Shown: one piece after another, positions 9,991 to 64,000 of the stretch
How positions within the stretch are numbered: position 1 is the first letter of the stretch
Layout: each line of letters begins with the position of its first letter
Source of the DNA: Caecitellus pseudoparvulus
Lineage: Eukaryota > Protista > Bigyra: Bicosoecida
Length of the DNA stretch: 64,000 nucleotides
Assembly (NCBI GenBank): GCA_965644315.1
Contig: CBFFRQ010000029.1
Location: 248,001 to 312,000 of the forward strand
Reading direction: 5' to 3'
Translations under genes and position numbers: made by a program
Notes under the pieces: generated by a model
Told to the model about the DNA's origin: nothing
Database searches by the model: none
What the model saw: only the letters and a program-made list of their open reading frames with translations

Positions 9991-10280
9991 AGGAGTCTTG
10001 GCGTGAAATGCACCGCGTTCGGCTCATGCCAGCGCCCACCCTCAGCTTGGAGAGCACCTGGCATAACCACTCAGGCCAGGCTCAAAGGTCCACTTGCCGC
10101 CCTCAGGCAAACTCCACCACCTGCACTGCACACACGCCACTTCTGCGCAAACACTGCTTGCTGTCCCAACGACAGACGTCCACCGGGAAGCCACCTCCCC
10201 CTCGTTGTGCTCCGAGGAGGAGCGCGGACTCCGTGCGGGAATTGCTTTCAACGCAGGCAACAAGCCCCCGCTGCTGCACG

Positions 10281-11699: not shown

Positions 11700-11723
11700 A
11701 GCAATGCAATGCCGCTGCCTGCC

Positions 11724-13623: not shown

Positions 13624-13825
13624 GTTGCAGCTTGTGGTGCCGTGTGTGCAATGCTGCTGGGAGCCAGGCTGCAAGGGGCGAGCGGGGCAGGGGCGCGCGG
13701 GGGACTGCGTGAGCACATGCGCGGCAGCGTGGGTGTGTTGGACATGAATTGCAATGACCTGTGTAATTGCTGCAAGGGGGCAGCGGGCCACGCCCCTGCC
13801 TTGTGCGGGAAGCTTCACAGGCGAC

Positions 13826-43908: not shown

Positions 43909-44245
43909 GGCTTCGTGTGGCGGATGCTAGCGCGTCCTGACCTCGACGCCGCGCCTGTCACGGCCAGGCGGGCGTGCAGGGCAAGCAGCGGGAATTGAAG
44001 GCGGCGGCGTTGGCGTGGCGGCGGCGCACAGGAGGGACCCCTGCCACGATCACTGCTCAACTGGGCGAGGCGGAACTCGAAAGTGGGTGTTGTTGCTGGC
44101 TTTTTGGCCGCACCTGTCGGCTGCTTGAAGCAACCCGCCCGCCCCCAAGCGTTGCGAAGCAACCAACGCAAGCAGCATGCTGCGGTGCTGCATTCTTGCG
44201 ACGCGCCACCGCGACACCGCGCCCTCAAGTCGGACATGGCACGCC

Positions 44246-46143: not shown

Positions 46144-49100
46144 TCAAGCCCATGCTACAGCAGAGTCAGATCCATCACGTTCAGGGGCTGTGGCGCTGGG
46201 CTCGGCCCTGCCTTCCGTGTCCATGTTTGTGTACCCCCTCTTGCAGCCGCTGCAGTGCCCAGCACGGTAAGCCAAGAAGATAATGACAACCACCACCAGG
46301 GCTGCAACGAGGGCCACACCGATGCCAGTGGCGATGAGATTGCCGTCTTTCTTTGCCTTGCTGGTCGCTGCAGCGGCAGGGGCTGCCGGGGACGGTGCGG
46401 CTTCCTCGACGTTAGCCACGTTCACCACCATGCTTGCCGACACGGGCTGGGCAGGGGAGCCAGCGTCTTGCCCAGACAGGGTGAGGGTGTACTGTGTAGT
46501 GCCGCTCTCCCAGTCCAACACGCCGGCTGTCGTCAAGTCGTACCCTGTGCCCGTGGCCACCAGAGCGAAGGGTGCCGAGGCAGGCGACAGGGTTGCCGTC
46601 ACAGCGTGCCCCTCGGGGTCTGTGAAGGTCAGCGCACCCACCACGGTGCCGACGGCAGAGTTCTCCTCCACAGTAAAGGTGCTTGGGCCGGTGTATGTGG
46701 GTGCCTCGTTCACATCCTCGATGGTGACGGTGACGAGGACGCCCTGCGAAGCTGGTGTCTCCTCAGCGGGGGAGTCCGTCAGCAGCACTAGCAACTCCCA
46801 CGTGTTGCTCCTCTCAGATCCATCTGGGCGGGCAGGTGGGTTCTCAAAGTCAAAGCGTGTCTTGGCATGGACGCGCCAGATGGTTCCGGTGTGCACGAAC
46901 TCGAAGTGCTCCGAGCCTACGCCCAGCACCTGGATGGAGTTCAGCTCGTCGCCGTCCTCATCTGCCACACGGATGACGCCGAAGGGCACGCCCACGTCTG
47001 AGTTCTCCGCCAGCATAAAGTGGTCGGTGTACGTCGGCTCTCCGTCCGGGTCAGGGTTGGTGTTGGCCAGCTTGGGCGGGTCGTTGGCGTCCAAGATGTA
47101 CAGGTACGCCGGCACGAGGGTAGTCTTGGCGCCGCCCGCTGCATCCAGGTTGTCTCCATCGTCCGTCAGCTCCACGCAGAAGGGCACCACACGGGAGCCC
47201 TCGGGTGGGGTGGGCGCTGCAGCATGGCTGATGTTGGGCGGCACTTGATTGGCGCCCATGTACGTGTCATTGTTGGAGAAGTCTGCCGTCGCTGCACCTG
47301 GCACAGACACAGCACCACATGGGTCGTTCACGTTGAAGGCTACAGGCAGGCGTCGCTCCTGGTGGCCAGCTGCGCCTCCCTGCCAGGGGCTGGTCGCTTC
47401 ATAGTCGAACCCCTTGACCGCGAGCAGGGCCCACACGCCGGCGCTCGTCAGTTCTGCAGCAAGGGAATCACCGGGTGAGTGCACGACGACGCTGGACAGG
47501 CTGTCCCCCGCATCCACGTGGAAGGCGGTCAGCTGCCCCAGCGGCGCGCCTGGATCGCCGTTCTCCACAACGGTGAAGGCGCGAGAGCGCAGTGCGCCCG
47601 ATGGGATGGGTTCCTCGTTCACATCTCCAAACTGACCGCCTGTGACTGTGGTCACGATGGGCTGAATGGCGCCTCCTCCGATGTAGTCGTACAGGGGCAC
47701 AGTGAGGTCATGGCTGAGGGTGGGCAGGTGCAAGAGTCCAGCGCTGGGGCTCTGAGAGCTTGCTGCCACCAGTGCCTCGAAGTCCAGGTGGGCGCCACAG
47801 AGGATGACGACATTGAAGCGAGTGCCCTTGTTGGAGATGTCGTGGGGGCCGGTCACTGCAGCAGTGGTGGTCAGCGTGGGCAGAGATGTGGAGCCGAAAG
47901 ACGTCGTGATGGTGACGTCTTCAGGCCGCACGGAGAAGGTGCCGAAGCCGTCGACGGTCTCCAGGGAGAAGTCGGGGTCATACCCTGGCACCACCATCAT
48001 GATTTGGGCTGTGTCCACGCCCTCCAGGCACGTGAACAGCTCAGCCTCATCCAGCGCCAGTTCGAGCGGGTCTTCATCCATGTCAGCCACCAGCACGTCG
48101 TAGGCTGGGCCCTGGGCGTTGTCCTGCTCAGGGATGCTAGAGGACACGACCACACGCAGGGGCGCCTCTCCCAAGGCACCCTCCACGCTGTAGTGCTGTC
48201 CAGTGAGAGGGGATGGAGAGGTCACAGTGCCCTCCACAGCAAGCCGCAGCGCCTCCAAGTCCCAGCTGGCGTCGGCCGTGTCGATGCTGCAGGTGGCCTC
48301 CACGTACGCATTGGCGCTCGTGTGGCTGAAGGTGCCACAGGAAGCCGTGAGGCCCTGCAGCGGCTCAGGCACGGTGCCACCAGACGGCCCGGCCAGGGTC
48401 AGTGTGAAGTCCAGCAAGTTGCCGGGGCGGTTCAAGTCGTGCAGGCGGATGTAGAAGTCCTGCACGACTGGTGTCACGGGGCCGAGGGTGGCTTCGTCGA
48501 CGGTGTAGGTGAGGGACTGTGGGAAGGACTGGATCTCCAGCTCCGGCTCCACAACGTCCGTCACGATGAGATCATGCTGTTGGCTTTCCACACATGAGCT
48601 GGGCCCGCATGCGACAAACTTGATGGGGAAGAAGAATGTCTCGGGGTGATCTGGAGCCATGAGGTTTACACCTGCGTGAGCTTGCAGAGCTTCGGTGTCA
48701 ATGGCGCCCGCACTAATGCTTGCAGAGGAGGTGGTCACGTCAGAGGCGGTCATTGCAACGAGAGATACGTCCAACGCCCTTCGCCCATCAGCCATGGTGC
48801 TGCCTGTGTTGTTCGAGTCGATTGTGCTGATGACGTGGAAAGTTAGCCCAATCGAATCCCATACGCTGACCATGGGGTACGAGACGGCACCCGGGAATTC
48901 TTGCTCAACGTTCTCGGTGACAGCAATGTCTGAGCCAGTGATCGAGGCAGGTGGCTCTACCGCGTTGCTCAGGGTGAGCGTGGCGGGCTCACTGGCAGCA
49001 CCCCACACGCCTGGCAAGACCTCGAACTGCACCACGAAGTCCAACACAATGTCAGGAGCGCTGGACGTGGTGAAGTCAGCCAAAGCACCTGCAAGGGCTT

Positions 49101-52100
49101 CGTAGTCCAGGTTCGTGGTGGCCACTGTGACGGTATAGGTGGCGGAGCCAGCAACTACGGCTGGGGTGCCGATGGTGATGCCCAGGGCGGAGGAGCCGGG
49201 CTGCAGGACATCATCAGAGTCCTTCAGGGGTGCCCACATAGGATCAGTGGAGGTGACAACGATACGAGCCTTCAGTGCGTCGGCTTGGTGCTGAATGCTG
49301 CCATCTCTCAGCACGACGTCAAATGTGGCGTTAACGGTGGGCTCGCCTTCCAGCACTGTAATGTAATGGTCCCGGGAGCCCTCTGCGAAGGCATCCACAG
49401 TGATGGGCCCAGCTGCTTCACGCACAGCAAGGGGGACGGGCACTGTGCGGGGGACAGCCTGGTCGCACAGGCGCGCAGCTAGCTGCAAATCCAGATCTGG
49501 CCTTGAGCCAGCTCGCAGCGTGGCAAGCAAGGTTGCGTTCACGGGCTCCGCATCGCTGCCTGCCATGGCACTGGCCAGCAACTTGTACGAAACGCCGGAT
49601 GGGAGAGACAGCGTGAATGTAGCCGTGCCAGCTTCCGGGACCTCCACTGCTGTCTGCACGGTTGGGATGGCCAGGGCGCCTTCATCGTTGAGGGCTTCAA
49701 TGGTGGAGATCAAGTTCAGCTGAGGCACGTCCGATGCACTGGCAAAGTCGTCGTCCAGGGCAGTGAGTCTTGCCACCACTTGCCCCGGTGGGCTGTCCTC
49801 CAATGGACTTGGGGCTTCGTCCGCAAGTGGCTCATTCACACTGAGCGAGGAGAGCCAGGAGTGTGAGAGGGTGAAGTCAAGCACGTTGACACCGTGGTCG
49901 CTGGTGATGGCGACTTGCTTGCCTTCGGTGCGAACGTCTCTTCCCAGGTTCTCACTCTCCGTACTCGCCACAAGCAAGTATGAGCCATCGGGCATGCTGT
50001 CCATCCCGAGTGCATGCGCGGGTGCTGACTCGCTTGAGTGAAGGAGGGGGTCAAGGAAAACGGCAACAGCACCCGCACCTTCAATCTCTTCACCCAGGAG
50101 CTCGGGTGTGAAGTCCATCATTGGAAGCAGCAGATCGAGCTCGGCAGAGCCCCCTACATCGCCAACAACGGGCGCTTGATCGCCCACACGCAGGTAGTCC
50201 TGACCCCCAAAGATACCAACAACGCCAGCGGGCAGGCTGCCAGCTTCCAGGAACACTGTGCTCGCCGAGGCCGGGCCAAAGTTCAGCCCACCTGCGCCTG
50301 CGTCGACGATGTACACCGCACCTCTGTCATCACCCCCATCCTGGCTGGCCATGCAGTTGCTCCCAGGCGCGGATGCAATGAAGCGTGGCACGGCAGATGC
50401 CGCGAAGCTGGAGACGTCAATTTGCCCGCTGCCCATCTCGGACTCTTCGCAGCTGCCAACAAGCACCATCACGCCGTTCGGCAAATCGTCCAGATCGATG
50501 GGTACATGAACCGTGTCTTCCTCCGGACCGAGCAACGAGTCGTGAACAAGGACAATGGACCCAGCAGGACTCTCGTCCTCTAAAGCGCCCCGCCTTCGCG
50601 CAAAGTCTGGGGAAAGGAGCACAAGGTCGTTGGCCCCGTTTCCATCAACATCAGCCACCTGGAAGCTGCGGCCGGCCAGATAAGCGTCTTCAGCGACACC
50701 CACAATCCTCACAAGCCCTGACTGACTGTCAGTGCCATCGACAGTCACGACAGCGCCCATGCTGCCTTCGATGAGCGCCGGGTGCAAGATGTAGACACCC
50801 CCTGCCTTGTTGCGTGCCTCATCGTCAAGTTCACTGGGCCCAAGCACGAGTGCTGTCTGACCGGGAGACCCCAAGAAGGCGACATCCAAGGTGTACTCGA
50901 TTTCGGACGCATCATCTGCCACGGGGAGCACAAACGTCGCAATGCCGGCTGTGCCGCTTTCGTGGTCCAGCTGGACAGGTGAATCTCCTTGTTCCCCGCC
51001 CGCAATACTTGGCACTTCTGCAATGTAAACTGCGCCAGGAGTCGCACTTGTACCTGCTGCTTCGAATGGCGTGCTCATAATGAGACGAGGTCCATCGCCA
51101 AAGTCGTGCACTCGCTCAAGCCGAAGAACTGCGCCCTGTGACTCAGCACCAAGGAAGCCGGTAACCCCAGCAGGAAGGGAGGCACTCTGGAAGACGATAT
51201 TGCTGCCTGACTCCAGATCGTTCAGCACAGCCGGGTGAATGACGAACACCCCCCCCACAGCCGCGTCAGCTGTGCCTAACAGCAGGTTCGGGTACGATAG
51301 GACTAATGCGCGTGCCCCACCTTCGCCGAGGGCTGCAATGAGGTGCTCCTCTTGTCCAAGAGAACCCTGGTCGCCGCTTCCAAGGAGAAGCAGAACACCT
51401 GGTAGGGCTTCCGAAGCAGAGATGATTGAAATCGTGGACCCTGACTCTGTTGGAGGATCAGGCAAACCGCGAGAGCACAAAGCAGCGACAGCGCCCACGT
51501 TTGAAGCGGAGTCAGAGTTGAAACTGGGCGTTCGAACAACGACATCAAGCAGATCGTCGTCATCCAGCAGCTCGAGAGTGACGCCCCCTTCACCAAGTTT
51601 GTCGTCTTGGGCGCCAGCCCCAAAGGCAAGCGTCTGTTTCGGCAGGGCAGCGGGGTCGATTTCCACCACATCCTCCTCTGTGGCCAGTTGTGCAATAAGA
51701 TCCCACTTGACCAGGAACACAGCGCCAGCTTGGCTTTTCAAGACCCCTCCAGGCAGCGAAAGGGTGGTCTTGGAGCTCTGCAGCACGAGGTCTAGCCCGG
51801 TGCTGCCATGAAAGATGGACCCCCAAAGCGTCGGGCCGTGAGCCAATTTGACATCGGTGGATATGCCCACAAATCCAAACACCCCTGGGGCGTGAACGGA
51901 GCGGTCCAGCACAATGGCAGGGTGGGTGCTACCTGATTCATGTGGGACGACCGTTGGGATCTTCACAAAGAACACGCCTCCACGCCCACTGGCGAGGCTG
52001 TCCGATTCAACGAGAAGCGCATCAAGCGTCGCATTGAGTGACACACGGGACACTCTCTTGCCTCCTCTTTTCGCACCGGCGCCCACAGCACCGAAAATGT

Positions 52101-52650
52101 ACGGCGGCAGGTTTGCCGGGTCCAGCTCCACGGCGCGGGATCGTGAGCTGTCAGAGAGAAGGGCTGCCACATCCAGAACGACGAAGACGCCCTCATCTTC
52201 ATCGCGGATGAGGAGGTCTACCGACGGGCCGTCACTGAAGTTGCCAGCCTGGACCTCGGCAAACCCAAGGCTCTGCGCTCCATAAATGGCCAACACGCCG
52301 TCCGGAAGGTGTTGGGTTGGGTCCATATCCTTGAGCACGCTCCCTCCAGGCGTTTGAGCGTGAGAGAACCTTGACATGACGACATAGATCACACCGCGGT
52401 TGCTGCTCCCTCCAACATTGCCGGAGGCTGAGCGCATGGTGTGGTCGGGCTTCCCGTCCCCATCCACGTCGCCGAGGGGTTCGTGGATGAGCTCTGGATC
52501 AGTGCCAGCATCGGGAACCTGGAAGCGGCGATTGTTCGAAAGCGTGGCATTCGTATCCACTGAAGTGATCTTGGGTGGACAGTCTGGGGCGGATGCCACG
52601 GCGGCACCTGAGGCGGCGTGAGTGAGGAGAGCAATGCCGTGCCGCCGCAT
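46144..52650 (-). CDS. Giant type I membrane protein: N-terminal FG-GAP (integrin-alpha-propeller-like) repeats + tandem cadherin-like repeats + TM + short tail; intronless
   Basis: DVDGDGKPD, DVDGNGANDL, GAVFLV/GAVYIV repeats; cadherin signatures LDYE/FDYE/FDFE, DVNEEP, DANDPP, DVNEAP, VEENSAVGTVVG, DEDGD; TM LIATGIGVALVAALVVVVIIFLAY; start uncertain (ORF open to 52716). Confidence 0.82.
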   Translation of the reverse strand: MRRHGIALLTHAASGAAVASAPDCPPKITSVDTNATLSNNRRFQVPDAGTDPELIHEPLGDVDGDGKPDHTMRSASGNVGGSSNRGVIYVVMSRFSHAQTPGGSVLKDMDPTQHLPDGVLAIYGAQSLGFAEVQAGNFSDGPSVDLLIRDEDEGVFVVLDVAALLSDSSRSRAVELDPANLPPYIFGAVGAGAKRGGKRVSRVSLNATLDALLVESDSLASGRGGVFFVKIPTVVPHESGSTHPAIVLDRSVHAPGVFGFVGISTDVKLAHGPTLWGSIFHGSTGLDLVLQSSKTTLSLPGGVLKSQAGAVFLVKWDLIAQLATEEDVVEIDPAALPKQTLAFGAGAQDDKLGEGGVTLELLDDDDLLDVVVRTPSFNSDSASNVGAVAALCSRGLPDPPTESGSTISIISASEALPGVLLLLGSGDQGSLGQEEHLIAALGEGGARALVLSYPNLLLGTADAAVGGVFVIHPAVLNDLESGSNIVFQSASLPAGVTGFLGAESQGAVLRLERVHDFGDGPRLIMSTPFEAAGTSATPGAVYIAEVPSIAGGEQGDSPVQLDHESGTAGIATFVLPVADDASEIEYTLDVAFLGSPGQTALVLGPSELDDEARNKAGGVYILHPALIEGSMGAVVTVDGTDSQSGLVRIVGVAEDAYLAGRSFQVADVDGNGANDLVLLSPDFARRRGALEDESPAGSIVLVHDSLLGPEEDTVHVPIDLDDLPNGVMVLVGSCEESEMGSGQIDVSSFAASAVPRFIASAPGSNCMASQDGGDDRGAVYIVDAGAGGLNFGPASASTVFLEAGSLPAGVVGIFGGQDYLRVGDQAPVVGDVGGSAELDLLLPMMDFTPELLGEEIEGAGAVAVFLDPLLHSSESAPAHALGMDSMPDGSYLLVASTESENLGRDVRTEGKQVAITSDHGVNVLDFTLSHSWLSSLSVNEPLADEAPSPLEDSPPGQVVARLTALDDDFASASDVPQLNLISTIEALNDEGALAIPTVQTAVEVPEAGTATFTLSLPSGVSYKLLASAMAGSDAEPVNATLLATLRAGSRPDLDLQLAARLCDQAVPRTVPVPLAVREAAGPITVDAFAEGSRDHYITVLEGEPTVNATFDVVLRDGSIQHQADALKARIVVTSTDPMWAPLKDSDDVLQPGSSALGITIGTPAVVAGSATYTVTVATTNLDYEALAGALADFTTSSAPDIVLDFVVQFEVLPGVWGAASEPATLTLSNAVEPPASITGSDIAVTENVEQEFPGAVSYPMVSVWDSIGLTFHVISTIDSNNTGSTMADGRRALDVSLVAMTASDVTTSSASISAGAIDTEALQAHAGVNLMAPDHPETFFFPIKFVACGPSSCVESQQHDLIVTDVVEPELEIQSFPQSLTYTVDEATLGPVTPVVQDFYIRLHDLNRPGNLLDFTLTLAGPSGGTVPEPLQGLTASCGTFSHTSANAYVEATCSIDTADASWDLEALRLAVEGTVTSPSPLTGQHYSVEGALGEAPLRVVVSSSIPEQDNAQGPAYDVLVADMDEDPLELALDEAELFTCLEGVDTAQIMMVVPGYDPDFSLETVDGFGTFSVRPEDVTITTSFGSTSLPTLTTTAAVTGPHDISNKGTRFNVVILCGAHLDFEALVAASSQSPSAGLLHLPTLSHDLTVPLYDYIGGGAIQPIVTTVTGGQFGDVNEEPIPSGALRSRAFTVVENGDPGAPLGQLTAFHVDAGDSLSSVVVHSPGDSLAAELTSAGVWALLAVKGFDYEATSPWQGGAAGHQERRLPVAFNVNDPCGAVSVPGAATADFSNNDTYMGANQVPPNISHAAAPTPPEGSRVVPFCVELTDDGDNLDAAGGAKTTLVPAYLYILDANDPPKLANTNPDPDGEPTYTDHFMLAENSDVGVPFGVIRVADEDGDELNSIQVLGVGSEHFEFVHTGTIWRVHAKTRFDFENPPARPDGSERSNTWELLVLLTDSPAEETPASQGVLVTVTIEDVNEAPTYTGPSTFTVEENSAVGTVVGALTFTDPEGHAVTATLSPASAPFALVATGTGYDLTTAGVLDWESGTTQYTLTLSGQDAGSPAQPVSASMVVNVANVEEAAPSPAAPAAAATSKAKKDGNLIATGIGVALVAALVVVVIIFLAYRAGHCSGCKRGYTNMDTEGRAEPSATAPERDGSDSAVAWA

Positions 52651-53990
52651 TGCAGCTGCAGCGGAGGGCACGCTACGCACCAAGCAGAGCCGCAGCCAAG
52701 AGCAGCACGGGTGCAACGGATTTCATGATCATTCAAAGCGGTGCCAGGTGGATTCGTGTACCTCGCAGCGGGCAGGGTCGGAGCGCAGGCAGCAGCATGT
52801 GTTTGTCGCTGCCGCCGGTGGGGAACGAGGTTCTCCGAGGCCGGCACAGGCGCGGGCTCTGCACAGCGCCAACGAAGGAAGCCTGCAAAGGGACCCTTAG
52901 GCAGGAGAAGGGGAGTTTGGATTATGCGAGCCCGCGTGCTCGGCGGGAGCTGTGCTGCGTCCCCCCCAGCCGGGCTCTGTGTGGCACCTGCCGAGCGAAG
53001 GATCTCAACAACCTCGCACGGCGAGCGTGCAGCCGGGTGGCGTTCGTCGCATGACAGGCCCAATCTCATGCTCAACCCAACGTCATCACATCAATGGCCT
53101 GGTTCATGACCGTGAGCGGGGCTGTCTAAGGCTTGCGGCGTGTGCAGGCAGTGGTGGTTGCGGGAGTTGGAGGTGAAACGGCCAGGTGCATGTGCAGTGC
53201 AGCACCACTTCCTCCACGACGACCTGTTTGATGCTCACGACAGCAATTGCAGCCATGACAACGAGGGGCTGCTTGAAGTAATGTTAAAGGCTGCCAGGGA
53301 CCAGCGGTTCACTTGGACCCGCCCCAACTGCACAGTAGCACGAGGGTCTACGATGGACATGTGCCCAGGGATTGGCTGACGGGGAGAGCCATCTTCTCTG
53401 ACAGACGTGGGTGTGGATACAGGCTGGGATGCCAATCAGTGACGGATCGTGGGGTGCGCTTCTGCGAAGGGCACTGGCCAGGTAGCTCTCGCAGAGCTGG
53501 CGCGGAGGGTGTGCAGCCCAGCTCCTGCCTCGCCTACTTGCCGCAGCGCCGTATTCTCAGGAGGCGCAGCCTGCACGGCGAGTCAGCTGTCTCATGGCGG
53601 ACTTCCACCCCCCCCAGAGTCTCCCGCTTGAGAATGCAGCAGTGCTCCGCTCGTGGGCGCGTTTCCATGGCACATCCCTTGCGAGCAATGCTTTCACGAG
53701 TCCGCTCCACAGCCGTCTCCTTCACAAATCCCCCCCCACCACCTACGTGCGTGCAGGTGCACACGGCCCCCTTTGTCTAGGCAGGGCGCCAGCGGGATCT
53801 TGTGGCCAGGCATTCCTTGCCTGCTGTGCACGGCGGCAGTGGTCGTGCGCCCTTCTCGCTGGGTGGAGGGCCAGAGCGGAGGAAGTCCTCGTACGCGATG
53901 GCGGGTGAGGCTGACGACCATGTGGGTGTGCTTGGGGCGTCCAGCTGTGAGGGGGCGTGTCAAACACCCGCCGACTCCCGCTCTGCGCAG

Positions 53991-54751
53991 GTGAAGGGGC
54001 TGATAGAGCAAGCTCGGCTGCAGTACAAGTGCGTTGGCGTGCAGGTGCAGTGCAGGAGGCTTGCGCAATTACCGCAAGTGTGCGGCGCTTGCGCAGGTCC
54101 CAGGCGCTGGAGGCGATTGCGAAGGCCAAAGCAGACACCAAGCGAGCCATGCAGGCGGAGCTGGACGCAGCGAGGGCCTCTGCGACGGCACAGATTGCTG
54201 CCCTTCGGCACCAGCTGGCGAACGAGCGGCAGCGTGGGGATGTGATGCTGAAGCGGTCCCTGGAGGCGTTGGTTGAGCAGCTGAAGGAGGCGGCGAGTGC
54301 GGGCAAGCACAGCTCTGGCTCACGCCCTGCTCAGTGGAACGGCGCTGCGCTGTTGAAGGTGGTGCGGTCGTGCGCCAATGCGGTGTACAGCCAGCTGAAC
54401 TCTGCGGGGGGCGGGCAGGTACAGGACAGCACCCTGGACGCCGAGGACGCCAAGCGGCTGGGGCTGCGGGGCAAGGGCGTGACGATGCTGGGGGGAGGGA
54501 TGGCGTCTGTCCCTGCCTCGGCGGCTGCGGAGCTGCTGGGGGAGGGGGCGGGGTCGTCGCCGTGGCCGCCTTGCCCCGGCAGTCTGAAAGATGCAAATGT
54601 GCTGGGTAGGTTTGCTAGCCGAGCTCACAGCCTGCAAGGAGTGCGGGGGAGACACCAGGAAAGTGTGATCGAGCTTGGTTTGTGTATTGAAAGCTGCTCA
54701 CGAGTTTCGCTGGTTTGTTTCCGCTGTCACTTGGGCACGTCATACAGATAG
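53991..54751 (+). CDS. Small spliced coiled-coil protein of the duplicated cassette (copy 1); 5' end unresolved
   Basis: Introns 53905-53990 and 54029-54096 give RWR|VKGLIEQARLQYK|SQALEAIAKAKADTKRAMQAELDAARAS...; differences between copies are mostly synonymous in this frame. Confidence 0.55.
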
Positions 54752-54761
54752 CCGGCGCGTG

Positions 54762-56870
54762 CTACTCGAAGTAGAAGAAGGGGCCCATCGACGGGAATCC
54801 GCCCATTCCGCCCATCATGGGATGCCCCATCGGGACAACCACGGCATGTCCGCCCATGCCCGCCCCGTGCAGAACAAGAGGGTGTCCGCCCATCCCCACC
54901 GCCATTGGGAGGCCCAAGTGAACCACGCCACCGCGCTCCCGCCTTCGGTTACGCAGTTGACGTACTTCTTCTTGGTGCCTGCGTTCTTGGGCTGCTTTCA
55001 GCCGCTCTTGCTCTTCTTGTTCACGCTTGTTTCGCTCGCGGATTTCAGCAAGCTCTTTCCTTCGCCGGGCATCTGCTTCAGCCTGCTTGATTGCCTTCGC
55101 CGCCTCGGCTGCTCGTGTCTCTGCGCTTTCCAGAGCTTCCATGCACCGGGTATGGTCTCGCGAGACTGCTGAAGCTGCTTGGCTAAGGGCAGTTCTGACA
55201 GCAGCCTCTGACGCCTGCCAAACTGCTCGCAGGAAGGGCTGCTCGAGGGAGGCGTGCTGAGCCCAGGTGGGCACCTCCACACTTGGGATGCTTTGGCCAT
55301 CAACACTGACAGTGTGCACGCCAAGGGAGGACAAGCGCCGACCCAAGGACTGCTTGACCCACGCGGGAGCGACGCATTTGCTGCGGATTGGCAGCTCATG
55401 TCCGCCTCCAGTGCACCATGGGTTCGGATCGCCTGCCGCTCCGGGGTGAGTGGCAAATCGAAGCTGCTGAATGTCCCGTGTCAAGCGTTTCAGGCGCTGT
55501 TGCGCCTTTGAGACAGCTGCAGATGCTTTGTGTTGAACTTCGGCTTTCGCAACTTCCGAATAGTGAGCAGTTTGCTCTCGGACGGCTTGCGAGATGAGTG
55601 CCCAGGCGTACTCTGATGCGGCTGATCTCATGCGCTGGCACCCCGCTGGGGAACCAGTCACCATTTTGTGCAAATGTGTGACTCGGTCGCAGACACCTTG
55701 GGTCGGTGTTGCCATCACCAACAAGGCATGGATGCCTTCGAAGGTATCCATGAATGGGCAAGTTGTGCTGCCCTGCAAGGCCTTTGTGATGCTCTGTCTG
55801 CCCGGTTCTGCAACAGCAGCACGGCGAAGCAGGACATGCGCAGGGTATTCTTGTGCAAGACAGGTAAGTTCGACGAGTTTTTGTTCTAGCTCAATACAGG
55901 CGTGCTCAAGTCGGGCTTGGGCAGCAGCTTCCTTCAGAACCTCCCCAAGGCTTTTTGAGCAGTGCTGTCCACTCCTTCGCCATGTTCGAACTGCCTGGGC
56001 GAATGCTTGCATGAGACCACCAACTTGGCTGGCTGATATACTGTCCCAGAGACCATCTCCATCTGAGTCGGCCTGGGCACACGCACCAATGGTGGTGCGA
56101 AACGAAACCCAAGGCCCCTTGTCAAGGCTGGCTTCCCTCAGGTCTGGGAGTGTCCACAACCTCACGCTGCTGAAGACTTGAGAAGCGTGCAGCCTGATTT
56201 GGTTTCGCTGTTTCGCTGATGGGGATTGTGCAGCCTCCAAGTTCAACACGCGGTCAGAGAGGCTCCGGTCTGAGCCTGTTGCACCAGCTCCTGAAAAACG
56301 GTAGTCTCTTAGCACAATGTGCAGGTGTCCCAGCTGTCCTCCGAAGCCTGTCAAGTGTGCAACTTCGGCTGTCGACTCGAGCAAGTAGCTCACCTGCTTC
56401 AGGATGTGATCCCGTCCGACACTGGTGCAGTTTAGGATGATATTGGAGCACAGCGGCAGGAGAGGCACAACTAACGTCCAGTCATGGTCGTCACCATTGT
56501 TTCCCCAGCCCTCGAGGTCGAGGAGCGCTGTTGCCCGGCTTCCCTCAGTTTTAGGTTTGCACACACGGCAGCCTTTGGTGCAGCTTTCCGCCGAGTGCCC
56601 AACAGTGAAGGGGCCAGACATGGAGCCTGTGTGGAGGAAGTTGAGGAGGGAGGACTTGCCGCTGCGCATGTCTCCGATTGCGCACGTCAGCCCAAGCCGC
56701 GTTTCAGGATCTGAGCTGCCCTGCAGGAGTTGGACACCCGCCTCATGCATCTCGGGGTCTCCAGCTTCGTTGACAGACATGAGGAGTACGTCAGCTTCTG
56801 GAGCCTCGCAGCGTCTCCATGTGCCATCCACACTCGCCCATTTCATGCTTCGTGGGGACTCCGCGGCCAT
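54762..56870 (-). CDS. GBP/atlastin-family (dynamin superfamily) large GTPase A, copy 1
   Basis: G1 GDMRSGKS, G2 FTVGHSAESCTKG, G3 LLDLEG, G4 IVLRD; helical/coiled-coil C-half; Gly/Met/His tail; intronless; likely ATG 56870. Confidence 0.85.
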   Translation of the reverse strand: MAAESPRSMKWASVDGTWRRCEAPEADVLLMSVNEAGDPEMHEAGVQLLQGSSDPETRLGLTCAIGDMRSGKSSLLNFLHTGSMSGPFTVGHSAESCTKGCRVCKPKTEGSRATALLDLEGWGNNGDDHDWTLVVPLLPLCSNIILNCTSVGRDHILKQVSYLLESTAEVAHLTGFGGQLGHLHIVLRDYRFSGAGATGSDRSLSDRVLNLEAAQSPSAKQRNQIRLHASQVFSSVRLWTLPDLREASLDKGPWVSFRTTIGACAQADSDGDGLWDSISASQVGGLMQAFAQAVRTWRRSGQHCSKSLGEVLKEAAAQARLEHACIELEQKLVELTCLAQEYPAHVLLRRAAVAEPGRQSITKALQGSTTCPFMDTFEGIHALLVMATPTQGVCDRVTHLHKMVTGSPAGCQRMRSAASEYAWALISQAVREQTAHYSEVAKAEVQHKASAAVSKAQQRLKRLTRDIQQLRFATHPGAAGDPNPWCTGGGHELPIRSKCVAPAWVKQSLGRRLSSLGVHTVSVDGQSIPSVEVPTWAQHASLEQPFLRAVWQASEAAVRTALSQAASAVSRDHTRCMEALESAETRAAEAAKAIKQAEADARRRKELAEIRERNKREQEEQERLKAAQERRHQEEVRQLRNRRRERGGVVHLGLPMAVGMGGHPLVLHGAGMGGHAVVVPMGHPMMGGMGGFPSMGPFFYFE

Positions 56871-57269
56871 TCTGCAGTTCTCCTCGCTTCCGGCAACTGG
56901 TCGTGCTATCAAGTCTCTTGAACTTCTTTCGAAACGCACGCCAGCCCAAAGCTGCCTATGCGTTGGAAACACAAGTAACAGGCAGCGCATTGTTGGCAGT
57001 TAGATTTGGACGGTGGAGGTTGTTGTGTGCTTGCATCCTGTCAGCCTGAATGACATCTTTCCAGCTGGCATTGCCGGCAACTTGCAGTTGGACCCCCCCT
57101 GCTCTGAGGGGGCAGGGGGTGCGTTGGGCACACCATCCCACAGCAGCTTCTGTGTATCACACAACCCATTCATCTGGACATCTCGGATTCGAAGAATACC
57201 GGCCATCTACGCTGCATCCCCAGTCCTACAATCGCGCGTGATCCAGCTCATTTTTTCTCCCCGGTCCAC
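56871..57269. promoter_or_regulatory. Probable bidirectional promoter between the divergent GTPase genes
   Basis: ~400-nt gap between head-to-head ATGs with central palindromes CCAGCTGG and TTGCCGGCAA and a CCCCCTGC..GCAGGGGG inverted repeat. Confidence 0.5.
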
Positions 57270-59576
57270 ATGGCTTCAGCTACGGAAACCACTCGCGCTA
57301 GTGCAGGTGGTGCAAGTGCCGATGAAGTTTCACCCATGGCTGTGAAAGTCATGCACGTGGATGAAGCAAGAGCAGTACCCGTTGTCAACATTGACGCATT
57401 GAAGCGCTGCGACTTCTCACTCCGGGAGTGCGTCAACATTGTGTCGATCTTTGGCCCTCTCCGCTCTGGGAAGAGCACAATGCTCACACGCCTCGTTGGA
57501 ATGGAGACGATTTTGGACTTCAAGGACACAGAGGAGGGCATGCACGCCTCTCCGCTGTTTGTTGTGAAGCATGACTCCAAGCCCTGCACCGTGGGAGTTG
57601 ACATGGCAACTGAGCGTTTCTCGGTCGCGGAGGTGATGAGCACCAAGTCAAAGCTGAGTCCTGATGCTGCAGCTGCCGCTCCACAAGTCGCCCTCATGGA
57701 CGTTGAGGGTGCGGGTGACAAGGGGGATGGCTATGACCTTACGTTGATCACCCCGATTCTCCCCGTGTCAAAGGTGGTTCTTTGGCGGGTCACATGGGCG
57801 GGTCGTGATAAATTGTTGCAGGAGCTGGAGGTGTTTCGTCAGGCTGCTGAGAGCCTCAAGCCTGTCGAAGAGGACGAAGTACCTTTGCCAGACAAACCGC
57901 CCTTTGGCCATCTTGTCATTGTTGTCAGAGATGCCAAGCATCTGGATGCTGCCACAACGTCTGCTGGAGCAACCATATCCGAACAGATCCTGGACAGGGA
58001 GCGTGTTCGGCCTACGGCATCAAACAGGAAAAGCATTGGGCAGCGCAACGAGATCAGAGCTGCACTGTATGACTGTTTTGCCTCTGTCACTGTGCATGCT
58101 ATGGCCGATCCGTTCTCTGACTTGGAAGGGTACGAGCGGGGCATGTGTGAGTTGCGGGATATGGTGGGTGAAATGCTGCTGGAGCCCCACAAGCTGTTTG
58201 GTGAGGCCGACATTCTCGCGGGCGACCTCCCTGATCTGCTTACAAGCCTGGCGGAGGCAGCTGCTGAGTCTGAGATAGTGTTGAACATGCGATCAGCGGT
58301 GGACACTCTGCTCGAGAATCGAGCGCGTGTTGCTTTGTCAGAGTACGGCAGAGCTTTGGACGCGAACTCTGCCAAGCTGACGTCCACTTTGGACCCTATT
58401 GTTCAAGTGTCTGTCGTGACGCAGCAGGGGAAAGAGCCATTGGGTCTTGACTCTGCAGGGGTGAGCCTTGAATGTGTGCAGAGAGCATTGGAACTTGCGG
58501 AAGCCAGCGGGGCACAGGGTCAGGCAACGGCAGCTGGGGCAGGATTCGGGGGGGATGGAGCAACTGACTCTTGGCTTGATCTCCTGCTGGGCATATCTAC
58601 CGACTACAGTGAGGCTTTGCAGTTGTTCAGCGCCACGATGGAGAAACTACACTTGTCAGCGGTGCGAGAATCCTTGACGAAGTTTAAGGGTCAACTTGAA
58701 GCAGCAGCTCGCCACAATGCTTTGCATAAGGCATCGGAAGCTCTGTATGCACTGCAAAGCAACATGCAGACGTGGGCCCGCAGGGATGCCACGTCATCGA
58801 CTCTGGGCATTCGAGCCCAGTTATTTCAGCAAGTGCCTGCTGCTGCGGCCGAGTGCGGCGGCCACGCTCTGGACGCGCAGACCATGTGGCATGAAGCTCC
58901 TGGGACAGCAACAATATTGGAGGATGTGCTTGGAGGCAGGGGCTCGTCTTCGCACCTTGCTCTTCCGTCTTGCCTGCAACTGCTGCCACCTGCAAGCAGG
59001 GCAAAGTTGACCGACACGCTGCAAGACATTGTTGCCCAGTTGGAGGCGGAAGCAGTGGCAGCTTTGGAGCAGCGGTGCGCCGCAGAAGCAGCTTCTCTGT
59101 CTGCTCAAGAGCGCCAGCGTCGTGTGGAGGAGTTGGAGGAGAAGGCGGCTGCTGCTGATGCTGCTCACCGCGAGGAGATGCGCCGCATGCTGGAGGAGCA
59201 GAAGCAGGCAAGCGAAAAGATGCGAGCAGAGCAGCAAGAGAGAGATGCTCAGCATGAGAAGAAGATGAAAGAATTGCAAGCAGAGTTGTTGCAGCAGCAA
59301 CGACAGGCACAGGCACAGATGCAGCAGCTTGCCCAGTCCATCGCTTTCTCTGGTGGGGGCGGGGGGGGCGGGGGATTCGGTCCGATGCCGCCCGGTCCGA
59401 TGCCGCCCGGTCCGATGCCACCCGGTCCATCATCAGGTGGGCCGATGGAGCGTGTTATTTATTCGCCCCCGCGAAGGGTGAACCCGTGGAATGCGTTCCA
59501 GAAGGCCAACGCAGGCCGAGGATGGTCTCCGTCTCAAATGTCCCGTGCCTATAAACGATTCAAGGGAGGGCGATGA
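57270..59576 (+). CDS. GBP/atlastin-family large GTPase B, copy 1
   Basis: G1 SIFGPLRSGKS, G2 PCTVG, G3 LMDVEG, G4 IVVRD; E/Q/K-rich coiled coil; GPMPP repeats; basic C-terminal mini-domain; intronless. Confidence 0.87.
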   Translation: MASATETTRASAGGASADEVSPMAVKVMHVDEARAVPVVNIDALKRCDFSLRECVNIVSIFGPLRSGKSTMLTRLVGMETILDFKDTEEGMHASPLFVVKHDSKPCTVGVDMATERFSVAEVMSTKSKLSPDAAAAAPQVALMDVEGAGDKGDGYDLTLITPILPVSKVVLWRVTWAGRDKLLQELEVFRQAAESLKPVEEDEVPLPDKPPFGHLVIVVRDAKHLDAATTSAGATISEQILDRERVRPTASNRKSIGQRNEIRAALYDCFASVTVHAMADPFSDLEGYERGMCELRDMVGEMLLEPHKLFGEADILAGDLPDLLTSLAEAAAESEIVLNMRSAVDTLLENRARVALSEYGRALDANSAKLTSTLDPIVQVSVVTQQGKEPLGLDSAGVSLECVQRALELAEASGAQGQATAAGAGFGGDGATDSWLDLLLGISTDYSEALQLFSATMEKLHLSAVRESLTKFKGQLEAAARHNALHKASEALYALQSNMQTWARRDATSSTLGIRAQLFQQVPAAAAECGGHALDAQTMWHEAPGTATILEDVLGGRGSSSHLALPSCLQLLPPASRAKLTDTLQDIVAQLEAEAVAALEQRCAAEAASLSAQERQRRVEELEEKAAAADAAHREEMRRMLEEQKQASEKMRAEQQERDAQHEKKMKELQAELLQQQRQAQAQMQQLAQSIAFSGGGGGGGGFGPMPPGPMPPGPMPPGPSSGGPMERVIYSPPRRVNPWNAFQKANAGRGWSPSQMSRAYKRFKGGR
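59379..59429 (+). repeat. 15-bp coding minisatellite (GGTCCGATGCCGCCC)x3 encoding GPMPP
   Basis: Read directly from the sequence. Confidence 0.9.
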
Positions 59577-59980
59577 CTCAAGGCGGACTCCCGACCCTCC
59601 CAGAGCCCCCCACTCCAGAATGTAGCACTGCTCCGCTTGTGGGCGCGTTTCCAAGGCACATCCCTTGGGACCAGAGCCTTCCCAAGCACACCTTGACAGA
59701 GCCGTCCCCCTTCACAAATCCCCCCCCACCACCTACGTGCGTGCAGGTGCACACGGCCCACTGTGTCTGGACAGGGCGCCAGCGGGATCTTATCGCCAGG
59801 CGTCACTTGCCTGCTGTGCGCGGCGGCAGCGGTCGTGCGTCCTTCTCGCTGGGTGGAGGGCCAGAGCGGTGGAAGACCTCGTGCGCGATGGCGGGTGAGG
59901 CTGACGACCATGTGGGTGTGCTTGGGGCGTCCAGCTGCGGGGGAGCGTGTCAAACACCCGCCGACTCCCGCTCTGCGCAG

Positions 59981-60741
59981 GTGAAGGGGCTGATAGAGCA
60001 AGCTCGGCTGCAGTACAAGTGCGTTGGCGTGCAGGTGCAGTGCAGGAGGCTTGCGCAATTACCGCAAGTGTGCGGCGCTTGCGCAGGTCCCAGGCGCTGG
60101 AGGCGATTGCGAAGGCCAAGGCAGACACCAAGCGAGCCATGCAGGCGGAGCTGGATGCAGCGAGGGCCTCTGCGACGGCGCAGATCGCTGCCCTTCGGCA
60201 CCAGCTGGCGAACGAGCGGCAGCGTGGGGATGTGATGCTGAAGCGGTCCCTGGAGGCGTTGGTTGAGCAGCTGAAGGAGGCGGCGAGTGCGGGCAAGCAC
60301 AGCTCTGGCTCACGCCCTGCTCAGTGGAACGGCGCTGCGCTGTTGAAGGTGGTGCGGTCCTGCGCCAATGCGGTGTACAGCCAGCTGAACTCTGCGGGGG
60401 GCGGGCAAGTGCAGGACAGCACCCTGGGCGCCGAGGACGCCAAGCGGCTGGGGCTGCGGGGCAAGGGCGTGACGATGCTGGGGGGAGGGATGGCGTCTGT
60501 CCCTGCCTCGGCGGCTGCGGAGCTGCTGGGGGAGGGGGCGGGGTCGTCGCCGTGGCCGCCTTGCCCCGGCAGTCTGAAAGATGCAAATGTGCTGGGTAGG
60601 TTTGCTAGCCGAGCTCACAGCCTGCAAGGAGTGCGGGGGAGACACCAGGAAAGTGTGATCGAGCTTGGTTTGTGTATTGAAAGCTGCTCACGAGTTTCGC
60701 TGGTTTGTTTCCGCTGTCACTTGGGCACGTCATACAGATAG
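59981..60741 (+). CDS. Small spliced coiled-coil protein of the cassette (copy 2)
   Basis: Duplicate of 53991-54751. Confidence 0.55.
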
Positions 60742-60751
60742 CCGGCGCGTG

Positions 60752-62860
60752 CTACTCGAAGTAGAAGAAGGGGCCCATCGACGGGAATCCGCCCATTCCG
60801 CCCATCATGGGATGCCCCATCGGGACAACCACGGCATGTCCGCCCATGCCCGCCCCGTGCAGAACAAGAGGGTGTCCGCCCATCCCCACCGCCATTGGGA
60901 GGCCCAAGTGAACCACGCCACCGCGCTCCCGCCTTCGGTTACGCAGTTGACGTACTTCTTCTTGGTGCCTGCGTTCTTGGGCTGCTTTCAGCCGCTCTTG
61001 CTCTTCTTGTTCACGCTTGTTTCGCTCGCGGATTTCAGCAAGCTCTTTCCTTCGCCGGGCATCTGCTTCAGCCTGCTTGATTGCCTTCGCCGCCTCGGCT
61101 GCTCGTGTCTCTGCGCTTTCCAGAGCTTCCATGCACCGGGTATGGTCTCGCGAGACTGCTGAAGCTGCTTGGCTAAGGGCAGTTCTGACAGCAGCCTCTG
61201 ACGCCTGCCAAACTGCTCGCAGGAAGGGCTGCTCGAGGGAGGCGTGCTGAGCCCAGGTGGGCACCTCCACACTTGGGATGCTTTGGCCATCAACACTGAC
61301 AGTGTGCACGCCAAGGGAGGACAAGCGCCGACCCAAGGACTGCTTGACCCACGCGGGAGCGACGCATTTGCTGCGGATTGGCAGCTCATGTCCGCCTCCA
61401 GTGCACCATGGGTTCGGATCGCCTGCCGCTCCGGGGTGAGTGGCAAATCGAAGCTGCTGAATGTCCCGTGTCAAGCGTTTCAGGCGCTGTTGCGCCTTTG
61501 AGACAGCTGCAGATGCTTTGTGTTGAACTTCGGCTTTCGCAACTTCCGAATAGTGAGCAGTTTGCTCTCGGACGGCTTGCGAGATGAGTGCCCAGGCGTA
61601 CTCTGATGCGGCTGATCTCATGCGCTGGCACCCCGCTGGGGAACCAGTCACCATTTTGTGCAAATGTGTGACTCGGTCGCAGACACCTTGGGTCGGTGTT
61701 GCCATCACCAACAAGGCATGGATGCCTTCGAAGGTATCCATGAATGGGCAAGTTGTGCTGCCCTGCAAGGCCTTTGTGATGCTCTGTCTGCCCGGTTCTG
61801 CAACAGCAGCACGGCGAAGCAGGACATGCGCAGGGTATTCTTGTGCAAGACAGGTAAGTTCGACGAGTTTTTGTTCTAGCTCAATACAGGCGTGCTCAAG
61901 TCGGGCTTGGGCAGCAGCTTCCTTCAGAACCTCCCCAAGGCTTTTTGAGCAGTGCTGTCCACTCCTTCGCCATGTTCGAACTGCCTGGGCGAATGCTTGC
62001 ATGAGACCACCAACTTGGCTGGCTGATATACTGTCCCAGAGACCATCTCCATCTGAGTCGGCCTGGGCACACGCACCAATGGTGGTGCGAAACGAAACCC
62101 AAGGCCCCTTGTCAAGGCTGGCTTCCCTCAGGTCTGGGAGTGTCCACAACCTCACGCTGCTGAAGACTTGAGAAGCGTGCAGCCTGATTTGGTTTCGCTG
62201 TTTCGCTGATGGGGATTGTGCAGCCTCCAAGTTCAACACGCGGTCAGAGAGGCTCCGGTCTGAGCCTGTTGCACCAGCTCCTGAAAAACGGTAGTCTCTT
62301 AGCACAATGTGCAGGTGTCCCAGCTGTCCTCCGAAGCCTGTCAAGTGTGCAACTTCGGCTGTTGACTCGAGCAAGTAGCTCACCTGCTTCAGGATGTGAT
62401 CCCGTCCGACACTGGTGCAGTTTAGGATGATATTGGAGCACAGCGGCAGGAGAGGCACAACTAACGTCCAGTCATGGTCGTCACCATTGTTTCCCCAGCC
62501 CTCGAGGTCGAGGAGCGCTGTTGCCCGGCTTCCCTCAGTTTTAGGTTTGCACACACGGCAGCCTTTGGTGCAGCTTTCCGCCGAGTGCCCAACAGTGAAG
62601 GGGCCAGACATGGAGCCTGTGTGGAGGAAGTTGAGGAGGGAGGACTTGCCGCTGCGCATGTCTCCGATTGCGCACGTCAGCCCAAGCCGCGTTTCAGGAT
62701 CTGAGCTGCCCTGCAGGAGTTGGACACCCGCCTCATGCGTCTCGGGGTCTCCAGCTTCGTTGACAGACATGAGGAGTACGTCAGCTTCTGGAGCCTCGCA
62801 GCGTCTCCATGTGCCATCCACACTCGCCCATTTCATGCTTCGTGGGGACTCCGCGGCCAT
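60752..62860 (-). CDS. GBP-family GTPase A, copy 2
   Basis: Same protein as copy 1 except DPEMH to DPETH. Confidence 0.85.
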   Translation of the reverse strand: MAAESPRSMKWASVDGTWRRCEAPEADVLLMSVNEAGDPETHEAGVQLLQGSSDPETRLGLTCAIGDMRSGKSSLLNFLHTGSMSGPFTVGHSAESCTKGCRVCKPKTEGSRATALLDLEGWGNNGDDHDWTLVVPLLPLCSNIILNCTSVGRDHILKQVSYLLESTAEVAHLTGFGGQLGHLHIVLRDYRFSGAGATGSDRSLSDRVLNLEAAQSPSAKQRNQIRLHASQVFSSVRLWTLPDLREASLDKGPWVSFRTTIGACAQADSDGDGLWDSISASQVGGLMQAFAQAVRTWRRSGQHCSKSLGEVLKEAAAQARLEHACIELEQKLVELTCLAQEYPAHVLLRRAAVAEPGRQSITKALQGSTTCPFMDTFEGIHALLVMATPTQGVCDRVTHLHKMVTGSPAGCQRMRSAASEYAWALISQAVREQTAHYSEVAKAEVQHKASAAVSKAQQRLKRLTRDIQQLRFATHPGAAGDPNPWCTGGGHELPIRSKCVAPAWVKQSLGRRLSSLGVHTVSVDGQSIPSVEVPTWAQHASLEQPFLRAVWQASEAAVRTALSQAASAVSRDHTRCMEALESAETRAAEAAKAIKQAEADARRRKELAEIRERNKREQEEQERLKAAQERRHQEEVRQLRNRRRERGGVVHLGLPMAVGMGGHPLVLHGAGMGGHAVVVPMGHPMMGGMGGFPSMGPFFYFE

Positions 62861-63260
62861 TCTGCAGTTCTCCTCGCTTCCGGCAACTGGTCGTGCTATC
62901 AAGTCTCTTGAACTTCTTTCGAAACGCACGCCAGCCCAAAGCTGCCTATGCGTTGGAAACACAAGTAACAGGCAGCGCATTGTTGGCAGTTAGATTTGGA
63001 CGGTGGAGGTTGTTGTGTGCTTGCATCCTGTCAGCCTGAATGACATCTTTCCAGCTGGCATTGCCGGCAACTTGCAGTTGGACCCCCCCTGCTCTGAGGG
63101 GGCAGGGGGGTGCGTTGGGCACACCATCCCACAGCAGCTTCTGTGTATCACACAACCCATTCATCTGGACATCTCGGATTCGAAGAATACCGGCCATCTA
63201 CGCTGCATCCCCAGTCCTACAATCGCGCGTGATCCAGCTCATTTTTTCTCCCCGGTCCAC

Positions 63261-64000
63261 ATGGCTTCAGCTACGGAAACCACTCGCGCTAGTGCAGGTG
63301 GTGCAAGTGCCGATGAAGTTTCACCCATGGCTGTGAAAGTCATGCACGTGGATGAAGCAAGAGCAGTACCCGTTGTCAACATTGACGCATTGAAGCGCTG
63401 CGACTTCTCACTCCGGGAGTGCGTCAACATTGTGTCGATCTTTGGCCCTCTCCGCTCTGGGAAGAGCACAATGCTCACACGCCTCGTTGGAATGGAGACG
63501 ATTTTGGACTTCAAGGATACAGAGGAGGGCATGCACGCCTCTCCGCTGTTTGTTGTGAAGCATGACTCCAAGCCCTGCACCGTGGGAGTTGACATGGCAA
63601 CTGAGCGTTTCTCGGTCGCGGAGGTGATGAGCACCAAGTCAAAGCTGAGTCCTGATGCTGCAGCTGCCGCTCCACAAGTCGCCCTCATGGACGTTGAGGG
63701 TGCGGGTGACAAGGGGGATGACTATGACCTTACGTTGATCACCCCGATTCTCCCCGTGTCAAAGGTGGTTCTTTGGCGGGTCACATGGGCGGGTCGTGAT
63801 AAATTGTTGCAGGAGCTGGAGGTGTTTCGTCAGGCTGCTGAGAGCCTCAAGCCTGTCGAAGAGGACGAAGTACCTTTGCCAGACAAACCGCCCTTTGGCC
63901 ATCTTGTCATTGTTGTCAGAGATGCCAAGCATCTGGATGCTGCCACAACGTCTGCTGGAGCAACCATATCCGAACAGATCCTGGACAGGGAGCGTGTTCG
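63261..64000 (+). CDS. GBP-family GTPase B, copy 2 (5' part, truncated by window)
   Basis: Duplicate of 57270 onward; DKGDGYD to DKGDDYD just after G3. Confidence 0.85.
   Translation, partial: MASATETTRASAGGASADEVSPMAVKVMHVDEARAVPVVNIDALKRCDFSLRECVNIVSIFGPLRSGKSTMLTRLVGMETILDFKDTEEGMHASPLFVVKHDSKPCTVGVDMATERFSVAEVMSTKSKLSPDAAAAAPQVALMDVEGAGDKGDDYDLTLITPILPVSKVVLWRVTWAGRDKLLQELEVFRQAAESLKPVEEDEVPLPDKPPFGHLVIVVRDAKHLDAATTSAGATISEQILDRERV

Follow-up and report, generated by a model that had tools for sequence, protein, structure and literature searches.

At the right end of a 64,000-nucleotide window from the genome of the bicosoecid Caecitellus pseudoparvulus, we found a tandem array of a three-gene cassette. 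The window, by which we mean the whole stretch of DNA analyzed here, covers positions 248001 to 312000 of the 314,547-bp contig CBFFRQ010000029.1 (C29) in an assembly of 30.6 Mb and 215 contigs (GCA_965644315.1). Each unit of the array holds a head-to-head pair of large GTPases, termed A and B, that resemble the guanylate-binding proteins (GBPs), and a small gene, termed gene 3. In the reading that we favor, and that we hold to be evenly poised between right and wrong, the array is real and each of its units encodes two old GBP-like paralogues transcribed divergently from a shared promoter region of 0.4 kb plus a small orphan protein. The fold of the GTPases is itself not new. The novelty is the recurrent head-to-head pair of unlike paralogues, here tandemly amplified with an orphan gene, and the uncharacterized clade to which the pair belongs.

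An initial annotation made from the sequence alone had described a unit of ~5.99 kb repeated at least twice. It had placed in this unit two divergently transcribed GTPases with the four GBP/atlastin motifs, ~400 nt apart, as well as a small coiled-coil gene, all within a region of lower G+C content. These points were borne out by our analysis. Repeat finding and a BLASTN search, with the unit as the query and the window and remaining contig sequence as the target, revealed a direct repeat with a period of ~5,990 bp at the right end of the window. The array comprises two full units, 98.8% identical, and the start of a third (~2.2 units, a lower bound because the contig ends inside the array), and the unit boundary lies directly after the stop codon of B. 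Across the 30.6-Mb assembly, we counted two copies of A, two of B, and three of gene 3, all in the array, and a search of the rest of the assembly returned no further copy of any of the three. Units 1 and 2 differ at 77 positions, 47 of which fall within positions 53591 to 53840, the first 250 bp of unit 1. In this left-edge stretch, units 2 and 3 are 99% identical; the identity of partial unit 3 is 93.8% with unit 1 and 99% with unit 2. A diverged edge with a uniform interior is the pattern that unequal crossing-over or gene conversion leaves in a real array, and not the one that collapsed haplotypes would leave.

Both A and B passed the Pfam GBP profile (PF02263), albeit modestly (35.4 bits for A and 29.5 bits for B, with a cut-off of 21.1), and neither matched RHD3_GTPase (PF05879). 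The G motifs read GDMRSGKS, CTKG, DLEG, and VLRD in A and GPLRSGKS, CTVG, DVEG, and VVRD in B, such that the P-loop arginine finger, the switch I threonine, the DxEG motif, and the RD guanine-specificity motif are intact in both. In a sequence search of the PDB, the motifs of A aligned to R48, K51, S52, T75, and D97 of hGBP2; A matched hGBP1/2 weakly, and B gave only low-complexity coiled-coil matches. Since all four motifs are intact, A and B are predicted to be active, guanine-specific enzymes rather than pseudo-GTPases. The two proteins share 27% identity over 226 amino acids (aa), and no other protein of this genome is closer to B than A is (E 8e-20).

AlphaFold2 (AF2) models of A and B placed the G domains at a predicted local distance difference test score (pLDDT) of >90 and the helical C-terminal halves at 40 to 80. 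Using VIA-align, the model of A was closest to atlastin-1 (4idn; Z 26.1, 265 residues aligned, root mean square deviation [rmsd] of 2.9 Å) and to the LG domain of hGBP1 (2bc9; Z 26.1, 260 aligned, rmsd of 3.0 Å), with full-length hGBP1 (1f5n) at Z 25.5 (327 aligned, rmsd of 5.4 Å). RNF112, Sey1, and SMG9 ranked below atlastin-1 and hGBP1. Foldseek gave the same picture for B (E 1e-14), the overall shape of which was nearest to Atlas clusters of GBPs, namely GBP plus PX, plant GBP plus GBP_C, and vertebrate GBP4-like proteins (437 aligned, rmsd of 4.3).

Seven other PF02263 genes are present in the genome. Two are tandem, same-strand canonical GBPs on contig C13 (C13:641498-646731), C69, C38, and C80 carry one canonical GBP each, and C95 carries a divergent one. 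The protein encoded at C80:180032-182533 ends in CTIQ, a CaaX box. The seventh, an open frame at C52:7598-9380, has two hydrophobic segments, and aa 366 to 425 form an atlastin hairpin. Because the genome has this separate atlastin-like gene, and a separate CaaX GBP, A and B are not the endoplasmic reticulum (ER) fusion orthologue, and they do not group with the constitutive ER-fusion atlastin/Sey1 proteins. An RHD3 Pfam search of the whole genome returned no match, although the controls were equally silent. Neither A nor B matched GBP_C (PF02841) at an E value of ≤0.01, whereas six of the other paralogues in the genome (five GBPs and the C52 gene) did. In shape, however, the helical part of B resembles that of GBP clusters. 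The absence of a C-terminal transmembrane (TM) hairpin and of a CaaX box, noted in the initial annotation, also held when we read the hydropathy windows and C termini: no 19-residue window reached a hydropathy of 1.6 in B, nor in A outside the G domain, and the proteins end in FFYFE (A) and RFKGGR (B). Taken together, these data support the assignment of A and B as GBP-like proteins and not as atlastin or Sey1.

We searched 1.84 billion representative proteins exhaustively with HMMER, using a profile of the A and B G domains. This search identified 452 relatives at an E value of ≤1e-3, 207 of them at ≤1e-10. Among the top 60, Pfam GBP was present in 57, with a best E value of only 8.7e-19. The relatives share a signature of GxARxGKSFLMN, CTxG, DxEGQGD, FGHLHIVxRD, and RNxIR, and the named ones come from the brown algae Ectocarpus and Nemacystus, from Nannochloropsis oceanica, from Picozoa, and from the fungus Jackrogersella. 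A fused domain was seen in several of the top 60: PH (6), PX (2), FYVE (1), protein kinase (2), cNMP-binding (1), and aerolysin (1). The PH, PX, FYVE, and aerolysin fusions, as read from the domain matches, suggest a membrane link within the clade. The aerolysin fusion is found in Jackrogersella minutella KAI1105451.1 (L040:8001-13161), in which the GBP-like G domain is joined to an aerolysin pore-forming toxin domain. Other searches were silent. A word-based protein search with the A and B G domains found none at an E value of ≤1e-3 (its sensitivity is limited, and HMMER later gave the 452 relatives). Neither B nor A picked up a relative when used to scan metagenomes; the family alignments were too divergent for a pattern search.

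The closest match to B was P0001, an orthologue-like relative with 34% identity over 328 aa that carries the C-terminal mini-domain of B (NPWNAFQ...Y+) twice. In a 129-row tree, the topology was (A,(B,P0001)), with A joining at an SH-aLRT value of 83. A was also the longest branch in this tree, at 2.52 changes per column. The alternative in which A and B are exclusive sisters was not rejected in a 33-row subset (p-AU of 0.256). The most fitting view of A is therefore that of an inverted duplicate of B that is old, of uncertain age, and fast evolving.

The initial annotation had also raised the question of whether the divergent pairing is conserved in relatives, and this was found in part. We inspected the neighborhoods of eight relatives, seven of which were informative, as P0005 starts 239 nt from the end of its contig and its upstream side lies outside the view. 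A head-to-head pair was present in two of these seven contexts. In Ectocarpus sp. 8 (L037, CAXNAN020000134.1), P0003 and its neighbor occupy positions 1784 to 7147 on the minus strand and 10001 to 14991 on the plus strand. Both genes contain introns, their starts lie 2.9 kb apart, and both products are clade members with 44 to 48% identity in the G domain. On a Logan contig from SRR11534415 (L041), a gene at 430 to 2523 on the minus strand faces one at 3540 to 5594 on the plus strand; these encode P0008 (684 aa) and a very divergent, GBP-like partner of 697 aa. The partner retains GPERTGKS, CTRG, and DTEG and has VCAN in the position of the RD motif, and by hhalign it matched the clade profile with 97.6% probability (E 4.5e-12). 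From these motifs, the partner may be a GTPase of changed specificity or a pseudo-GTPase. We considered whether A and the L041 partner are orthologous “A-type” genes and rejected this, as they matched at 12.7 bits, below the score of the partner against many other clade members. Since the partner is not specifically related to A, the pairs look like independent inverted duplications, or else they are too old to trace. Pairing in three lineages is suggestive of selection for coregulation, in a sample that is small and nonrandom. This locus was the only one in which we saw the pair tandemly amplified along with a third, orphan gene.

We then modeled the complex of A (residues 1 to 345) and B (residues 20 to 345) with two GTP molecules in three runs, alongside three controls. 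The A-B model reached an ipSAE of 0.71 in all three runs, compared to 0.00 for the best control, with a partner pLDDT of 79 and agreement between runs on at least 82% of contacts. In calibration, using a set without small molecules, 51 of 78 solved complexes attained this ipSAE mark, as did 2 of 108 mismatched pairs. In the model, A and B meet at the canonical G interface, which comprises the P-loop, the switch regions, and G4. Structures of the GBP1 and atlastin G dimers have been solved, and a test of this kind is also passed by proteins closely related to a true partner. The models thus support A and B as compatible with a GBP-type G dimer, and they do not discriminate a heterodimer from a homodimer or reveal a partner preference. 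Of the heteromeric module proposed in the initial annotation, the G-interface dimer of A and B was backed by the model, but the distinction from homodimers was not.

These results suggest how the cassette might work. A and B would each be an active GTPase. Upon GTP binding, the G domains would pair face to face via the canonical G interface to give A-B heterodimers and possibly homodimers too. The helical stalks and two unlike tails, hydrophobic and Gly/Met/His-rich in A and a basic mini-domain in B, could then bring the assembly to a membrane or another target. Cotranscription would hold the two partners in balance, and tandem amplification would raise their dose.

The coordinates of the array and its genes are collected in Table 1. 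The start of A is likely the ATG at 56870, as the AF2 model then opens with the strand that GBPs typically have at the N terminus, and the 40 upstream codons look noncoding. A consists of a G domain (~aa 35 to 300), a helical middle, a charged 110-residue helix (aa 536 to 646), and a Gly/Met/His-rich tail. This tail (aa 647 to 702, window positions 54765 to 54932) is of low complexity, also rich in Val, with GMGGH repeats and an aromatic end, and it is modeled as disordered; it could be membrane inserting or metal binding. B consists of a G domain (aa 24 to 300), a helical middle, a long helix (aa 574 to 691), a Gly/Pro linker, and a basic two-helix mini-domain (aa 739 to 768, window positions 59484 to 59573) with the sequence NPWNAFQKANAGRGWSPSQMSRAYKRFK and a pLDDT of ~85. 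The mini-domain had no Pfam match and was found nowhere else in this genome, and neither tail had a Pfam match even at an E value of ≤10. Three of the eight nonsynonymous differences between the B copies sit in this mini-domain. The 399 nt between the A and B start codons are presumed to be a bidirectional promoter.

Table 1. Features of the tandem array, in window coordinates
Feature	Position	Strand	Basis and remarks
Tandem unit 1 (5,990 bp)	53591..59580	.	BLASTN; diverged array edge in the first ~250 bp
Tandem unit 2	59577..65571 (past window end at 64000)	.	BLASTN; 98.8% identical to unit 1, 67 mismatches
Partial unit 3 (first 976 bp)	65568..66547 (contig end)	.	BLASTN
Gene 3, small orphan, part coiled-coil	53898..54751 (main frame 53957-54751)	+	Substitution pattern between copies
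GTPase A, 702 aa	54762..56870 (ORF to 56990)	-	Uninterrupted open reading frame (ORF), Pfam, AF2 model
Shared 5' intergenic region, 399 nt, 54.6% G+C	56871..57269	.	Between the A and B start codons
GTPase B, 768 aa	57270..59576	+	Uninterrupted ORF, Pfam, AF2 model
GTPase A, copy 2	60752..62860	-	2 codon differences from copy 1
GTPase B, copy 2	63261..64000 (continues to 65567 past the window)	+	11 codon differences from copy 1 (3 synonymous, 8 nonsynonymous)

Gene 3 was assessed by the differences between its copies. Its frame has 7 synonymous differences and 1 nonsynonymous difference, compared to 3:13 and 1:7 in the other overlapping frames, a pattern in favor of a genuine coding frame. The gene may have a first exon that starts at the ATG at 53898 and is followed by a 65-nt GT..AG intron at 53991 to 54055. 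Using the long second part of the gene, we found no relatives of gene 3 in Pfam or Atlas, and there were none in the genome outside the array. A 220-aa ORF at 59573 to 60235 is unlikely to be a gene.

In animals, GBPs have a central place in cell-autonomous immunity, and a link to plant immunity has emerged recently. To our knowledge, almost nothing is known of GBPs in protists. By analogy with the animal and plant proteins, a role of A and B in cell-autonomous defense is plausible. Besides those known roles, the points in its favor, all by analogy, are the aerolysin fusion within the clade, the fast evolution of A, and the amplification. In addition, GBP genes of the stramenopile Aureococcus change expression upon giant-virus infection (PMC5917014). 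In a bolder proposal, the head-to-head GBP-like genes in C. pseudoparvulus, in Ectocarpus, and on L041 would be a recurrent arrangement, each matching a conservative GTPase with a fast-evolving one. Such pairs might be selected as obligate, asymmetric G-domain heterodimers, with a sensor or regulator and an executor acting in defense against giant viruses or ingested bacteria and a dose tuned by tandem amplification. We regard this extension as unlikely.

Several observations weigh against the paired-paralogue reading and its defense corollary. The copies are nearly identical and without an arms-race sign: the A copies differ at 2 codons and the B copies at 11, which implies amplification without diversification, and the 3:8 split of synonymous and nonsynonymous changes in B involves too few differences to interpret. 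The five informative contexts other than Ectocarpus and L041 had no partner gene (P0001, P0002, Nannochloropsis, P0160, the fungal gene, and P0163 are those listed as unpaired), and no A-like gene lies within 1.7 kb upstream of P0001, to which B is most closely related. The complex test may recall the solved GBP/atlastin G dimers and is blind to which family member binds, and the helical part of the models reaches a pLDDT of only 40 to 80. The low G+C content at third codon positions (GC3, 0.60) may mean low expression. Moreover, the stretch appeared in no run recorded as RNA, and two runs that are RNA only by guess, X6 and X7, gave four and two small contigs, respectively, that lie inside A and B. 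Lastly, other members of the superfamily, such as DFCP1, have roles in membrane trafficking, and clade members in other species lie in ordinary single-copy contexts.

In the strongest alternative, A and B play no part in immunity and are housekeeping GTPases of membrane remodeling or trafficking, acting in the dynamics of the phagosome, the vacuole, or organelles. The repeat would then be a recent neutral segmental duplication kept uniform by unequal crossing-over. We consider this possible, if on balance improbable. Near-identical copies with differences clustered at the array edge are what such homogenization would give, and the clade is widespread and usually single copy beside ordinary genes, e.g., next to GCN1 in Nannochloropsis. 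The PH, PX, and FYVE fusions suggest phosphoinositide membranes in general, and the related DFCP1 NTPase works in autophagy (PMC10329651). However, an atlastin-like gene and five canonical GBPs (two on C13 and one each on C69, C38, and C80) are already encoded elsewhere in the genome. The very fast-evolving A branch, the pore-forming domain fused to one clade member, and the response of the Aureococcus genes to giant-virus infection also count against a purely housekeeping role.

A second alternative is that the duplication is an assembly artifact, such as a collapsed or misjoined repeat or haplotypes laid end to end. The end of the contig inside the third unit would fit this, but haplotypes laid end to end would give no third start, and the 77 differences are structured as described above. 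In addition, Logan contigs from run X3, a second and independent sample of this organism, covered 30 of 30 bins of positions 54700 to 60600, including the unit-junction bin, with several variant contigs where the units differ from each other. No single X3 piece among those listed bridged the junction. On these grounds, an artifact appears highly improbable. In the same run, the summed contig depth at window positions 59625 to 60600, over the left part of the unit, was 3 to 7 times that of gene A, with small indels near 59720. This could mean that there are more, diverged copies than were assembled or merely that overlapping contigs were summed; Logan depths are sums that lack a single-copy baseline and are not convertible to copy number. 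Run X5, from a different organism, matched parts of A and B, as well as of the intergenic and gene 3 regions, at 95 to 99% identity; one of these matches is a 303-nt contig that spans 56817 to 57119 with 1 difference.

We give very little credence to the remaining alternative, acquisition of the cassette from a giant virus or mobile element, which would account for the low GC3 (0.59 to 0.60 in A and B versus 0.87 for neighboring host genes) and recalls the GBP/atlastin-like proteins that giant viruses encode (an Atlas cluster and matches in Yasminevirus and Megaviridae), because the A plus B profile found no relative in IMG/VR contigs, the nearest relatives are cellular, GC3 is also reduced (0.64 to 0.79) in all other GBP paralogues of the genome, and no integrase, capsid, or terminal repeats were seen in 42 to 64 kb. 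Low GC3 is common to all these paralogues in a milder form and may reflect low basal expression rather than foreign origin.

The composition shift extends beyond the array. The G+C content is 65 to 75% over most of the window and 56 to 63% from ~44 kb on. The last 20 kb (44000 to 64000) thus form a compositional island, with a GC3 of 0.59 to 0.68 compared to 0.87 in the housekeeping genes of the window, and no viral or mobile-element hallmark was seen in it. Adjoining the array is an ORF of 2,190 aa at 46144 to 52716 on the minus strand (GC3 of 0.68), with Pfam matches to FG-GAP repeats of the integrin-propeller type and to cadherin. Farther left, at 42385 to 43766 on the minus strand, two overlapping ORFs match positions 115 to 263 and 43 to 114 of the protein kinase profile and look like one kinase gene split by an intron or frame change.

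Our data place the locus in a divergent, widespread, and uncharacterized GBP-like clade, in which unlike paralogues that share a promoter region recur in at least two other lineages. If these pairs act as heterodimers, they would represent a new mode of operation for the GBP/atlastin superfamily. The organism looks like a tractable giant-virus host and would give a test case for the origin of GBP-based defense. If the pairs do not act as heterodimers, the locus would be a recent segmental duplication of two membrane GTPases.

Compared to the interferon-inducible GBPs of animals (hGBP1, hGBP2, and hGBP5), A and B share the arginine-finger P-loop, the switch I threonine, DxEG, and RD. They also share a G domain followed by an elongated helical domain, an arrangement in gene clusters, and a G-interface dimer, which for A-B is predicted. 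The structures match (a Z of 26 to 2bc9, with 327 residues aligning to full-length 1f5n), but the identity is only 13 to 17%. Unlike the animal proteins, A and B do not match Pfam GBP_C and lack both a CaaX box and a polybasic tail, and they carry a far longer charged C-terminal helix and other tails. Their genes also form a head-to-head pair of 27%-identical paralogues rather than arrays of close paralogues. Atlastin and Sey1-RHD3 have an equally similar G domain fold (Z 26.1 to 4idn) and dimerize via the G interface, as modeled for A-B. However, A and B have neither the C-terminal TM hairpin nor an RHD3_GTPase match, and the atlastin-like gene of this genome is a separate one on contig 52. 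The clade signature is common to A, B, and other members of the GBP-like clade, such as N. oceanica KAM3573080.1 (named “guanylate-binding protein”), Ectocarpus CAM9142812.1, and Jackrogersella KAI1105451.1. Members elsewhere carry PH, PX, FYVE, kinase, or aerolysin modules, which A and B do not. DFCP1/ZFYVE1 likewise has a GBP/atlastin-like P-loop domain, dimerizes upon nucleotide binding, and acts on membranes (PMC10329651). However, its nucleotide is ATP, T189/G190 replace the P-loop arginine, and there are two FYVE domains, whereas A and B have no FYVE domain and keep both the arginine finger and the RD motif.

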